A DNA stretch of 64,000 nucleotides from Calcarisporiella thermophila CBS 279.70 (lineage: Eukaryota > Fungi > Calcarisporiellomycota): assembly GCF_041956535.1 (NCBI RefSeq), contig NW_027192212.1, positions 409,129 to 473,128 on the forward strand. The letters run 5' to 3'. Positions within the stretch are counted from its first letter, which is position 1. Each line of letters opens with the position of its first letter. Below are positions 9,938 to 64,000 of the stretch, piece after piece. Below the pieces are notes generated by a model. It was given only the letters and a program-made list of their open reading frames with translations. It was not told the DNA's origin and made no database searches. Position numbers and translations under genes: made by a program.

Positions 9938-10009
9938 GGACGGCTAGCTCAACGGTAGAGCGTGAGACTGCAGATCTTAAGGTTTCGGGTTCAAATCCCG
10001 AGTCGTCCT
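9938..10009 (+). tRNA. tRNA-Cys(GCA)
   Basis: Cloverleaf: acceptor GGACGGC/GTCGTCC, D arm GCTC/GAGC, anticodon loop CTGCAGA, T arm TCGGG-TTCAAAT-CCCGA, U73 discriminator, followed by a T8 Pol III terminator. Confidence 0.96.
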
Positions 10010-59918: not shown

Positions 59919-62079
59919 TTTTTTTTTTGTTAGGAGTATCTTTATTAAAAAGTATCCTTTTGTGTACTTGATAAAAGAGATTAATAAACATCAGAGCACA
60001 AGAAATCCATGTAAGAGATTTGGGATATGAGGAGAGCGAATACCTTTCCTATTTTTTCAAGGATAGAGAAAAGTAGTACACGAGAGGGAGAAGGAAAAAA
60101 AAACAAAATAGAATACGGATGGTAGGATATACGGTAAAGTCGTATTGGAGTTAAGAGTTTTATGATGAAAGATATTTCATCCTAGACCTCCGTTTGCACC
60201 TCACGATTTTTTGCATTTCGTTTCCCAGTTGTTTAGCGAGCGCTATTTCGCCTGGTTGGGCGTTATCCGTTATTATCGAAAATCTGAACGATAGATGATC
60301 CAGATTACTGCATTATGGACCGTTGACACTACTTCCCGTTGGTAGCCCATGGTTTTGTGGTCTGTTCCAAATAGTCTGTCTTCCTTGGTTGATTCGTGGG
60401 CTCTCACTCAAAGAATGCGGCGGACGTAACTGTCTACTATTTATCATAGTTGATTTATGGCCGGGCATTCCAGGTAAGCATGAATAATGGTTTCCACTGC
60501 GTTGGTTGTGCACTACTTGCAAATATTATGTTGTCCTGTCCACTTACTAGTGATGATACCTCTCACCCATCTGTGTTTCAAGAGTCTCCATCTTCGTGCC
60601 CTATGCTTGGGTTCACTCGGCCGCTTTTTCCAGTACATCCAAGCTATCTCCCATCTGATGGAGTCGCTTGAGGTCTCTTCCCATTCTGGAGTGATACCCT
60701 CTCCTTTGCTTGTGCCTGACGTCCCGGGGCGAAGCCGCATTGGTCAGGATGGATGATCGACGTGATTACTCTCTGTATTCTCTACGCGAGTATTCTCGTT
60801 AGGAGTTTAATGTCCACGTTTAAGAGAGATATCGGTCGCCAGTTGCTCAGTGATTCGGCATCTCCTTTCCTCTTGTAGATTAGGACTATCGTTGCTTTCT
60901 TCAAGAAATCCATAGGGTTATCCAACATGAGGGCCTCATTAAAGAGCTGCTGAAGCATGAGGGCGAAATCATCTTCGAAGGCTCGATAGAATTCCGCCGT
61001 TAGTCCATCCGGGCCGGGCGACTTATTCTTTGGGGCCAGTCGAATGGCTTCCTCACCTCTTCTTCACTGATGGGTTCTTCCAGTTTTCCGCGCTTTTCGG
61101 CAGATAGAGTCTTGTCTACGTAATTGAGGATGATGTCTTGGTCGGTTGTACTTGTTGGCTCTCCAGTATAAAGTTCTGTGTAGAAATGGGCGGCCATTCT
61201 GGCTATTTCGCTAGGGTTCAGTGCGTGTTCCATCCGTTCTTTTCAGAGAAGTCATTGCGCTGACTGCTCTCCTCCCCGCAATGCGGCGGTGGAAGAATGC
61301 TGTGGATTTCTCGCCCTGGTCTGTCCAATTCAGGCGAGATCGGATACGTAGTGCTTCGGCCCTTCTATCAACATGGGCAGCTAGTTGGTTGCGGATTTTT
61401 TCTAGTTGGGCATATGATTCTCTGGTCCATGGGCCATCTTGGGATCTCTTGAGAGCCCTGGTTAGTTGTATTTCCTCTGCTCTAAAACAGCGTTGTCTCT
61501 GTGCCGCCTATGCGGTAGTGAGTGAACGAAATTGCTGTTTTGCAGCGTTCCAGAAAAGGCCAGTGGTCCTGAAAGATTCGCGGGTTGTGAGTAGATGATG
61601 CCGGTGAGCCTAAAGAGTGGTAGCGTAAGCTTCGTCATTTGCAAGGCTAGAGTTAAATCGCCATTGGCCATAACCAGATTTAGGAGCTGCAGTGTTCCTT
61701 ATTTCTATCTGAATAGCCATGTGGTCATATGTAGATCCGGGGGGGGTCCAGTAGAGTTACATCCGCTGTTTTTGATATTGGTGCCGTGCTGACTCAAAAT
61801 AGATCCAGTCGCGACCTTATTAGAGAGCTTCTGTGTGAGTACGTGAACTGATTGCCTTTAGATGAAAAGTGCCTGTGGACGTCAGTGAGGGAGGCCGCAG
61901 ACGTGATCATCCGAAGTCGATGTGAGGAGCCTCTGCGGTTTGGGAGTTATGTCCTCCATTCTGTCACTTTCCATCCCGTCGTCATCCATTACTTCCACGT
62001 CGTTTACAGTTCCTTCCTTGGGGTCGATGGGGTTCTCTGGCTCTATGATCTCGTTTTCTTCCAGCCATGGGTTATGCTG
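59919..62079 (-). mobile_element. Degenerate, internally deleted non-LTR retrotransposon (L1/Tx1-type LINE)
   Basis: APE remnant LTDVHRHF...FTYSH...SRLDLF; linker RSRLNWTDQGEKSTAFFHR; RT start KSPGPDGLTAEFY, NWRPISLLNVDIKLL, HPDQCGFAPGR; then deletion to the C-terminal region; AATAAA and poly(A) at 59919-59946; stops and frameshifts. Confidence 0.92.
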
Positions 62080-62096
62080 ACTGGCTGAGGACAGCG

Positions 62097-62187
62097 TTTT
62101 TTTTTTTCAACAAAGAAAACCTTTTATTGAAAAGTCTCCTGTACAGTTAAAACGGTAGGGTAACTTCTACGTCAAAATCACCAGGGT
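62097..62187 (-). mobile_element. 91-bp 5'-truncated retroposed insertion (AATAAA + A11), 17-bp TSD ACTGGCTGAGGACAGCG
   Basis: TSD copies at 62080-62096 and 62188-62204. Confidence 0.85.
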
Positions 62188-62210
62188 ACTGGCTGAGGAC
62201 AGCGGCGAAA

Positions 62211-62654
62211 TTTTTTTTTGATCAAAAGTGAATCTTTATTGTTTAAGAAGACTCAAAGTACAATTGTTACATTATTAAAAGTAATAAAATGAGAGAAAAG
62301 CTAGATATTAACGCGGTATTGCAATTCGGGGTAAGTTGATTATAACAAATTTTCTCCTCAAACGGTTAGATGAGTAATAAAACTCAATTAACTGCGGGTA
62401 TTAGGGAACGACTTGATAAGTGATATGGAGAGAGAGATATGAAGAAAGAGGTGGGGTAGTAGTAGGGACTACTGCATCAATCCAGTTCTAGAGCCGCTCC
62501 ATTAGCTCCTTTCACCGCGCCCATTTTACACCACCTGCTTCGATACTCTTCAATTTGTCGCTTTTTTCAGGCTCTTGTTAGTTCGGCTCCTATAGCCTCC
62601 TCAATATCCAGCTTGGCTCGATTGATGATGATTTCGGATGAGGCTTGAGTCCAA
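62211..62654 (-). mobile_element. 5'-truncated LINE tail (ORF2 C-terminus + 3'UTR + poly(A)), 14-bp TSD AGGACAGCGGCGAA
   Basis: TSD copies at 62196-62209 and 62655-62668. Encodes ASSEIIINRAKLDIEEAIGAELTRA*KKRQIEEYRSRWCKMG. Confidence 0.88.
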
Positions 62655-62668
62655 AGGACAGCGGCGAA

Positions 62669-63154
62669 TTTTTTTTTTTGATCAATGCCGAGTCTTTATT
62701 GTATAGGAAGACTCTAAAATACAACTGTTACATTATTATAAGCAATAAAGTGAAAGGGAAGCCAAAGTTAAAGCTTTGGGTGATATCGTAGATCGAAATG
62801 ATATGTTGGTCATATTGACTTTCAGCTCAAATAGGTAAGGGAATGGTGAAACTCAACTAACTGTGGATATCAAAGGATAGCATGAGAAGTGGGGTGGGGA
62901 GTAAACAAATGGAAGCAGAGGATAGGAAGGGGATAAGGTAGGGATTACTGCGTTATCCCAGTATCAGTGCCGCTCCGATCGCTCCTTCTCTAACCGCACC
63001 CAGCTTGCACCATCTTCTTCGAAACTGTTCGATTTGCCGGTTTTTTCGTGCTCGGATTAGTTCGGCTCCTATCACTTCCTCAATATCTAGTTTGGCCCGG
63101 TTGATGATTATTTCGGGTGAGGCTCGGGTGCTTTCGAAATGAAAGGCGATCCGA
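62669..63154 (-). mobile_element. 5'-truncated LINE tail, same family as the previous one but diverged, 12-bp TSD GACAGCGGCGAA
   Basis: TSD copies at 62657-62668 and 63155-63166. Encodes RIAFHFESTRASPEIIINRAKLDIEEVIGAELIRARKNRQIEQFRRRWCKLGAVREGAIGAALILG*. Confidence 0.88.
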
Positions 63155-63579
63155 GACAGCGGCGAAAAATGATCATAATTTTCAAAAATTTCATTTTAAT
63201 ATTTTTACATAAAAACATATTCTGTTGCGTCGAATAATAGACTAATAAGGTCTATCCTGACAATCCTCTAGCTATCCCTAAGCTCTTGATTGTCCTTCCG
63301 TAAACACTTCAGAAGGCCAATAAACGACACAGAGTGGATTGTAAAGTAATCCGGTTCTATCCCAAAACAAAAATAGCACTCTTTTATTGTAAACAAAGAT
63401 GTTTCCCTTTTATACTAAAGATAACGTACCACAAACATAAATGTAAACAAGATAATAAAAATATAATGAGGTAATCAAGGAAAAATATGTTAACCGTAAC
63501 CGTAAGCTAATAAATATACTAATAAAACCATCCCAAGAACTTAAAGAAGTGTAAAAGAAAAATAAGCCGCCAAAGCCAC

Positions 63580-63919
63580 TTGTTTTTTTTGATCAATCAA
63601 TGGAAACTTTTATTTAATTTCCATATATTACATGAAGTTAATGTCAATGGACTTAACATAACGAGATATAGATCCTTGATCGATAGACTTTCAATCGATA
63701 TGCGTGTATCGTAGTTGTCGTGAATAGCATGTACGTGAAACCGATGTAATCTTTTGTACTTATCGTAAGGGCGATCTTATCAATAATCAAGACTCAGCTT
63801 CTGATCAAGTGGATAGCAGTCACAAGCTAAGAGTAAGTGCTGGTGGGGGAAGTGGGATTCGAACCCACGCCGTTCTCATCGGCATCCCAGGGATAGTCCA
63901 CTACACTAACCCTCCCCCA
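63580..63919 (-). mobile_element. Full-length tRNA-derived SINE with 16-bp TSD AAGCCGCCAAAGCCAC
   Basis: TSD copies at 63564-63579 and 63920-63935. tRNA-like head 63918-63841 (A box TAGTGTAGTGG, B box GGTTCGAATCC, encoded CCA); ~250-bp body; AATAAA; TTGATC(A)8 tail. Confidence 0.85.
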
Positions 63920-64000
63920 AAGCCGCCAAAGCCACCTTTCCTCCTACTGCGCCATAATTCCATATTATGCCAAATCTCCTTACAACAATTCAACCAGCTT

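Follow-up and report, generated by a model that had tools for sequence, protein, structure and literature searches.

Stacked retrotransposon insertions in the fungus Calcarisporiella thermophila, probably placed by their distance from tRNA genes

Calcarisporiella thermophila is an early-diverging fungus. Near the end of one 64,000-nt stretch of its DNA (contig NW_027192212.1; hereafter ‘the window’), three truncated retrotransposon tails lie head to tail at what was once a single site. We call them ins1, ins2 and ins3; all are tails of long interspersed nuclear elements (LINEs), ins1 belonging to a separate family. The best explanation overall, in which we place considerable confidence, is that the LINEs of this organism, together with a short interspersed nuclear element (SINE), keep to a fixed distance upstream of tRNA genes when they insert, including a gene predicted to lie just beyond the end of the window. 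The insertion site is probably set by distance from the tRNA gene and not by local sequence, because target-site duplications (TSDs) elsewhere in the genome copy nucleotides of earlier elements, so that the local sequence is irrelevant.

The association with tRNA genes emerged from loci that were picked solely by their homology to ins2. Among 27 such loci, ARAGORN finds tRNA genes in 13. Fifteen insertion events were resolved at nine tRNA genes (Lys twice, Ser, Arg, Ile, Leu, Gln, Pro and Thr), the nick position being taken as the start of the TSD and measured from the 5' end of the mature tRNA. All nicks fall between -60 and -78, and all 15 events are head-to-head, the 5' end of the element facing the 5' end of the tRNA. 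The nick is on the tRNA-sense strand, and the insertion comes to lie between the nick and the gene. This geometry fits 10 of the 13 tRNA-bearing loci. The SINE, which is tRNA-derived, gives a similar distance. First inspection of the genome yielded 170 candidate copies, and the 40 that were scored are 96–99% identical, which makes the family a young one. When these 40 full-length copies are set against the best 63 of 1459 tRNA candidates, six of them start 88–94 nt, head-to-head, from a tRNA, and ARAGORN adds a tRNA-Pro that pairs with a seventh. Subtracting 7 unaligned nt and the TSD, these starts correspond to nicks at about -65 to -72. On a rough estimate, the chance expectation for the six pairs is ~0.0003. 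The tail of the SINE ends in ...ATTGATC(A)n, as LINE tails do, which suggests that the same LINEs mobilise it.

Patterns around tRNA genes might also come about without active targeting, if random insertions survived in harmless, gene-poor DNA near these genes (a transposon graveyard), and the 5 kb surrounding the stack are indeed full of transposon remnants (long terminal repeat (LTR), SINE and degraded LINE). Selection, however, cannot yield reuse of a site to within a few bp, a single orientation and a sharp window of -60 to -78 at nine tRNA genes, and the SINE copies, young as they are, are already patterned. We consider survival by default very improbable as the cause.

The stack in the window comprises the following parts, in order of position:

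62080-62096 and 62188-62204: 17-bp TSD of ins1, ACTGGCTGAGGACAGCG; the first copy is distal to the tRNA gene and holds ~10 nt of the 5' end of an older LINE.
62097-62187, minus strand: ins1, 91 nt of tail sequence from a separate family, carrying AATAAA and poly(A).
62188-62209: overlapping TSD copies, that of ins1 (62188-62204) and that of ins2 (62196-62209).
62196-62209 and 62655-62668: 14-bp TSD of ins2, AGGACAGCGGCGAA.
62210-62654, minus strand: ins2, a 445-nt LINE tail with a degenerate C-terminus of open reading frame 2 (ORF2) that contains an in-frame stop, a 3' untranslated region (UTR) and poly(A).
62655-62668: nested TSD copies, the 14-bp copy of ins2 enclosing the ins3 copy at 62657-62668.
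62657-62668 and 63155-63166: 12-bp TSD of ins3, GACAGCGGCGAA; the second copy is proximal to the tRNA gene.
62669-63154, minus strand: ins3, a 486-nt LINE tail, the youngest of the three.

All three inserts lie on the minus strand, 5'-truncated, polyadenylated and head to tail, with nested TSDs, and the 3' end of each consists of an AATAAA-like signal and poly(A), which reads as poly(T) on the plus strand. The first-strand nick of ins3 falls between positions 63166 and 63167, and those of all three inserts lie within 6 bp. An initial annotation, made from the sequence of the window, had described three inserts in one orientation, each with its own TSD (17, 14 and 12 bp), AATAAA and poly(A), at one site used three times within 6 bp, with primer ends that are not T-rich. 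The coordinates, the exact TSDs, the nicks and the primer ends (..GCGAA and ..GCG) all agree with that description.

The inserts represent three independent events and not a tandem duplication, because ins2 and ins3 are only 71% identical and are truncated at different points at their 5' ends, their closest copies lie elsewhere, and ins1 is of another family. The 3' end of a 5.1-kb LINE (locus L073, contig C3) matches ins3 at 98.3% identity, whereas no other copy exceeds 91% identity to ins2. The ins1 tail family has at least 41 copies, which are up to 96% identical, and the ins2/ins3 family at least 46, whose 3' flanks are all different. The description of ins2 and ins3 as more conserved in protein than in DNA was loose: by a count made by eye from the alignment, their short coding parts are ~80% identical in DNA and ~73% in protein, and their 3' UTRs ~62% identical. 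Ins2, moreover, has its in-frame stop.

We looked as well at the possibility that the array is an assembly error, a tandem duplication (named in the initial annotation as an outcome that would overturn its reading), or one chimera produced by template switching among several RNAs. In favour of such an origin, similar repeats follow one another head to tail in an assembled contig. The divergence of ins2 and ins3, their different 5' ends and the resemblance of each to copies elsewhere nonetheless speak against this, as does the exact TSD that every insert possesses: in chimeras of the U6-L1 type, the parts are joined directly within one TSD. The same architecture, furthermore, recurs at 11 loci on different contigs. 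An artefact of any of these kinds is, in our judgement, most unlikely.

These 11 recurrences came to light when ~336 kb of fetched loci were scanned for stacks. All are independent, head-to-tail stacks on different contigs, with the same TSD start, shared or nested, after each successive tail. One, in L023, is a second triple stack, composed, in this order, of a SINE, an ins2-like tail and an ins1-like tail. In four loci (L023, L007, L017 and L032), the TSD of the upstream element includes the first 2–5 nt of the 5' end of the downstream element. In L030, the 16-nt TSD of an ins3-like element is derived wholly from an earlier LINE, and the 9-nt TSD of a SINE is a copy of the TSD of that ins3-like element plus 3 nt of the element itself. 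Since the TSD of the upstream element holds 5' nucleotides of the downstream one, the upstream element must be the later arrival. The upstream, tRNA-proximal element is thus the younger one, and local sequence is irrelevant to the choice of site.

Two side observations concern the joints of such stacks. In L013 (1484-1530), an ins3-like tail runs straight into an ins2-like element truncated at its 5' end, and no unique TSD separates the two; this junction probably resembles the L030 case, with a TSD made of earlier-element sequence. Near-identical 5' truncation points also occur in inserts whose TSDs differ: at ins2 positions 157–159 in L015, L018 and L019, and at positions 1–6 in ins2 of the window and in L010. 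Truncation points shared by independent inserts suggest preferred stop sites of reverse transcriptase (RT), or defined RNA 5' ends.

The chief alternative to placement by distance is that the LINE endonuclease reads a local site resembling GAGGACAGCGGCGAAA, or the 5' terminus of a resident LINE, in the manner of Tx1, R1 and Keno. In its favour are the three or four insertions within 6 bp in a single orientation, the similar flanks GCCGCTGTC in the window, GCCGCTATC in L002 and TTTGCCGCC in L007, and the presence of CGAGAG in 6–7 flanks. The 16-mer GAGGACAGCGGCGAAA, however, occurs once in the 28-Mb genome, and allowing up to two mismatches gives 31 matches, compared with 21 for a control pattern, which amounts to the control rate. 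The site is thus single-copy, and is not the body of a multicopy repeat or RNA gene, as a target of the Tx1/R1/Keno type would be. Collecting the tails and building a logo of their flanks, a check proposed in the initial annotation, gave no positional signal: across 62 distinct tails of all families, the information content does not exceed 0.14 bits at any position of the TSD start (position 1 excepted, where A is excluded by construction), and the flanks are unlike one another. TSD starts are not A-rich, and primer ends are GC-rich. The TSDs in L030, being largely or wholly earlier-element sequence, tell against a local recognition site too, and the CGAGAG flanks that were traced (L023 and L077) sit in a recurrent stretch, ~65–70 nt upstream of tRNA genes.

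The second form of this alternative, recognition of the 5' ends of resident LINEs, fares no better. The initial annotation had the site abutting the 5' end of an older LINE. What lies there is a truncation within the last part of ORF1; in other copies, the sequence of the older LINE goes on past the junction, upstream and through ORF1, and the copy in the window is merely truncated there. Truncation points differ from stack to stack, so there is no common 5' end to be recognised. The 5' ends of resident LINEs are found at the hot spot merely because each earlier insertion regenerates the same position. We regard recognition of local sequence as largely refuted already, and as a highly unlikely account of the stack. 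The related proposal of a safe haven, or multicopy target, survives in part: a hot spot is reused in one orientation, and a multicopy class of gene serves as its landmark, but the sequence at the point of insertion is not what is recognised.

One motif deserves separate mention. CAGTCAC(A) lies upstream of several nicks, and was seen 28 times where ~10 were expected. We rejected it as a requirement for insertion: the copies that we examined are in the recurrent stretch, 55–63 nt upstream of tRNA genes, and the motif is absent at other sites, including that of the window. The recurrent stretch itself is ~65 nt long, starts 9–15 nt upstream of many tRNA genes, begins TGTTAC..., holds CAGTCA(C), with a CAGTCAC motif at about -55 to -63, and sometimes ends in a run of As. 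It may be a promoter element, a retrocopy or part of an LTR. Its occurrences are as follows:

L003/L076 (tRNA-Pro), L012 (tRNA-Asn), L037 (tRNA-His) and L075 (tRNA-Asp): recurrent stretch.
L023, L010, L076 (tRNA-Lys), L049 and L077: related stretches.

We return now to placement by distance, and to the landmark that it would require for the stack in the window. Between ins3 and the window end lie the following features:

63167-63222: unique spacer of 56 nt, whose last 4 nt, ATTC, are one copy of the TSD of a solo LTR.
63219-63222 and 63988-63991: 4-bp TSD of the solo LTR, ATTC.
63223-63987, minus strand: solo LTR with TGTTG...CAACA ends, 409 bp net, interrupted by a SINE.
63564-63579 and 63920-63935: 16-bp TSD of the SINE, with the nick between 63935 and 63936.
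63580-63919, minus strand: complete tRNA-derived SINE of 340 bp, inside the solo LTR.
63988-64000: last 13 nt of the window; an RNA polymerase III (Pol III) gene, a tRNA gene, is predicted on the plus strand within ~10 nt after 64000.

The prediction comes from distances. If the solo LTR and the SINE are removed, the nick of ins3 and ins2 lies 65 nt, and that of ins1 70 nt, from the window end. For the nick of the SINE itself the distance is 65 nt as well, and for the TSD of the LTR it is 9 nt. The 65-nt distance of ins3 and ins2, the 65-nt distance of the SINE and the 9-nt distance of the LTR all fit one landmark, and we therefore predict that a Pol III gene, such as a tRNA gene, starts on the plus strand within ~10 nt after base 64000. 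The LTR has informative relatives. Copies of its family (window 63223-63987, minus strand; L042 870-1283; L075 4450-4814; and L051) are 97.5–97.8% identical, and the copy in L042 is 8 nt upstream of a tRNA-Met gene. L042 is, indeed, a visible analogue of the arrangement proposed for the window: tRNA-Met, 8 nt, the window’s LTR family, a 71-nt spacer and a LINE. Related LTR families begin 7–16 nt upstream of tRNA genes, and these form a second, Ty3-like targeting window.

Targeting might be real and the landmark in the window nevertheless something other than a tRNA gene, such as a chromatin boundary past the window end or a Pol III unit of a different kind (5S, U6 or a SINE-like gene). The landmark lies beyond the window and is reached by inference, two matching 65-nt distances require merely some fixed landmark, and TRE5-A of Dictyostelium also uses 5S genes (PMC5911963). 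Yet all nine landmarks resolved in the genome (9/9) are tRNA genes, and the related solo LTRs whose landmark is resolved sit 7–16 nt from tRNA genes. We consider a landmark of another kind unlikely, although less so than the other alternatives.

If new inserts land next to the gene, layers should become younger towards it. Identity to the nearest relative is 90% for the older LINE, 96% for ins1, 91% for ins2, 98.3% for ins3, 97.7% for the solo LTR and 99% for the SINE. With the short ins1 set apart, the layers close to the predicted gene thus have the higher identities.

Several points weigh against placement by distance from a tRNA gene, and we gather them here. The landmark of the window stack is predicted beyond the window end and not observed. 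Between 58000 and 64000, ARAGORN and Rfam (at E values up to 1) find no Pol III gene besides the head of the SINE. None of the best 63 of the 1459 tRNA candidates adjoins the window end, which carries no weight either way. The array is read from the assembled contig. At 96%, ins1 interrupts the monotonic age gradient, though it is merely 91 nt long. The model needs the stack to have preceded the LTR, and divergence does not separate ins3 (98.3%) from the LTR (97.7%). Element-rich DNA is over-represented among the loci sampled. Finally, 3 of the 13 tRNA-bearing loci show another geometry, which may be explained by neighbouring tRNA genes in clusters.

Beyond the stack, on the side away from the predicted gene, lie two further remnants:

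59919-60350, minus strand: LINE tail of a different family, with poly(A) at 59919-59928, in place of the lost 3' part of the older LINE.
60711-62089, minus strand: the older LINE copy, which forms the stack's oldest layer; its 5' truncation falls at the end of ORF1, and it retains remnants of an apurinic endonuclease-like (APE) domain and of the start of the RT.

The older LINE is 84–87% identical to positions 566–700 and 1257–2497 of the 5.1-kb LINE in L073, and has an internal deletion of 556 bp at ~61949 relative to that copy on C3. It is without the RT core and its own 3' end. A TSD for it was sought and not found; its 3' part has been lost and replaced by the different tail family. The 5' start of that tail (59919-60350) resembles a 531-nt downstream element of L073. 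A tRNA-Cys gene elsewhere in the window (9938-10009, plus strand) has no retroelement in the 900 nt upstream of it; not every tRNA gene is occupied.

The 5.1-kb LINE gives an idea of the machinery involved. Its ORF2 matches the Pfam families Exo_endo_phos, the start of RVT_1, and a C-terminal zf-RVT. It is collinear with residues 7–572 of human L1 ORF2p (endonuclease, linker and start of the RT; E 4e-53), which is its best match of solved structure. ORF1 has no match in Pfam, and the Protein Atlas returns only generic APE/RT clusters. To judge from the order of its predicted domains (APE, RT, C-terminal Cys-rich), the element is an L1-like APE LINE.

From these observations we propose the following course of events. 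L1-like LINE families, with APE, RT and zinc finger, and the tRNA-derived SINE nick DNA ~60–78 nt upstream of the mature tRNA 5' end, which leaves the element head-to-head with the tRNA gene. The position would be measured from the gene, so that each event hits the same place to within a few bp. A new insert comes to lie between the tRNA and the one before it, older inserts are pushed outward, and each event restores the position for the next. In the window, the order would have been the older LINE, then ins1, ins2 and ins3 (an order that, among these three, we infer), then the LTR element and, last, the SINE. The LTR element, Ty3-like, would have inserted on the upstream side of the gene, a few bp away, and then collapsed to a solo LTR. 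The SINE would again have inserted ~65 nt from the landmark, a point by then inside the LTR. Between them, the LTR and the SINE would later have displaced the three-insert stack from the gene. By analogy with TRE5-A, the LINE ribonucleoprotein may be recruited by the Pol III initiation complex (TFIIIB/TFIIIC), docking on it and using it as a ruler.

Behaviour of this kind has precedents among the social amoebae. TRE5 of Dictyostelium and NLTR-B of Polysphondylium insert within a narrow interval on the upstream side of tRNA genes, in opposite orientation and independently of local sequence (PMC5911963, PMC5006619), and the TRE5-A ORF1 protein binds TFIIIB (PMC5911963). In the literature consulted, non-LTR elements that target tRNA genes are documented in dictyostelids only: TRE5, TRE3 and NLTR-A/B (Table 1 of PMC5911963; PMC5006619). 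Our search of the literature found no case of a tRNA-targeted non-LTR element in fungi or in Calcarisporiella. The elements described here resemble TRE5-A (formerly DRE), TRE5 and NLTR-B in being APE-type non-LTR elements of the L1 group, with an ORF1 and an ORF2 of APE, RT and zinc finger. They share with TRE5 and NLTR-B the narrow upstream window, the opposite orientation and the independence from site sequence, a likeness in behaviour. In Dictyostelium, too, Ty3-like LTR elements (DGLT-A) integrate closer to the same genes. The ruler differs: -60 to -78 here, in contrast to -44 to -54 for TRE5 and -39 to -64 for NLTR-B. The host here is a fungus, whereas theirs are Amoebozoa; and here a tRNA-derived SINE is co-targeted, and several families of LINE tails share the behaviour.

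The LTR elements have their own counterparts. Like Ty3 of Saccharomyces and DGLT-A of Dictyostelium, the solo LTR of the window and its related families start 7–16 nt upstream of tRNA genes. They differ from the LINE stack in mechanism, insertion being integrase-mediated with a 4-bp TSD instead of by target-primed reverse transcription, and in the window the LTR merely displaced the stack. The LTR elements form a second layer of the same safe-haven strategy. With R1 and the Tx1 group (Tx1L, Keno and Mutsu), the likeness is one of outcome: these, too, are APE LINEs that return to the same site again and again in a single orientation, regenerate their target and build head-to-tail arrays. They read a conserved target in a multicopy repeat, however, whereas here the flanks are unrelated, the site is unique and specificity is positional relative to tRNA genes. 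Human LINE-1, by contrast, prefers TTTT/AA and primes on T-rich ends, unlike the GC-rich primer ends and the TSD starts, not rich in A, found here.

Taken together, these comparisons lead us to think it rather likely, if less so than placement by distance itself, that C. thermophila possesses an active system directed to Pol III genes, in which LINEs and a young SINE insert at -60 to -78 and Ty3-like LTR elements at about -5 to -16; that this system is probably independent of the dictyostelid TREs; and that it would be the first tRNA-targeted non-LTR system reported outside the Amoebozoa. If true, it would be a new, convergent case of the safe haven, in a compact 28-Mb genome, with a different ruler and a co-targeted SINE. 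It would offer, too, a second independent system in which to learn how target-primed reverse transcription reads the position of TFIIIB/TFIIIC. Repeated TSDs, taken by themselves, call for caution before sequence-specific endonucleases are inferred from them. For C. thermophila, the rule accounts for the numerous retroelement stacks in its genome, and the layered stacks provide a built-in chronology of insertion, in which the layers nearest the tRNA are the youngest.

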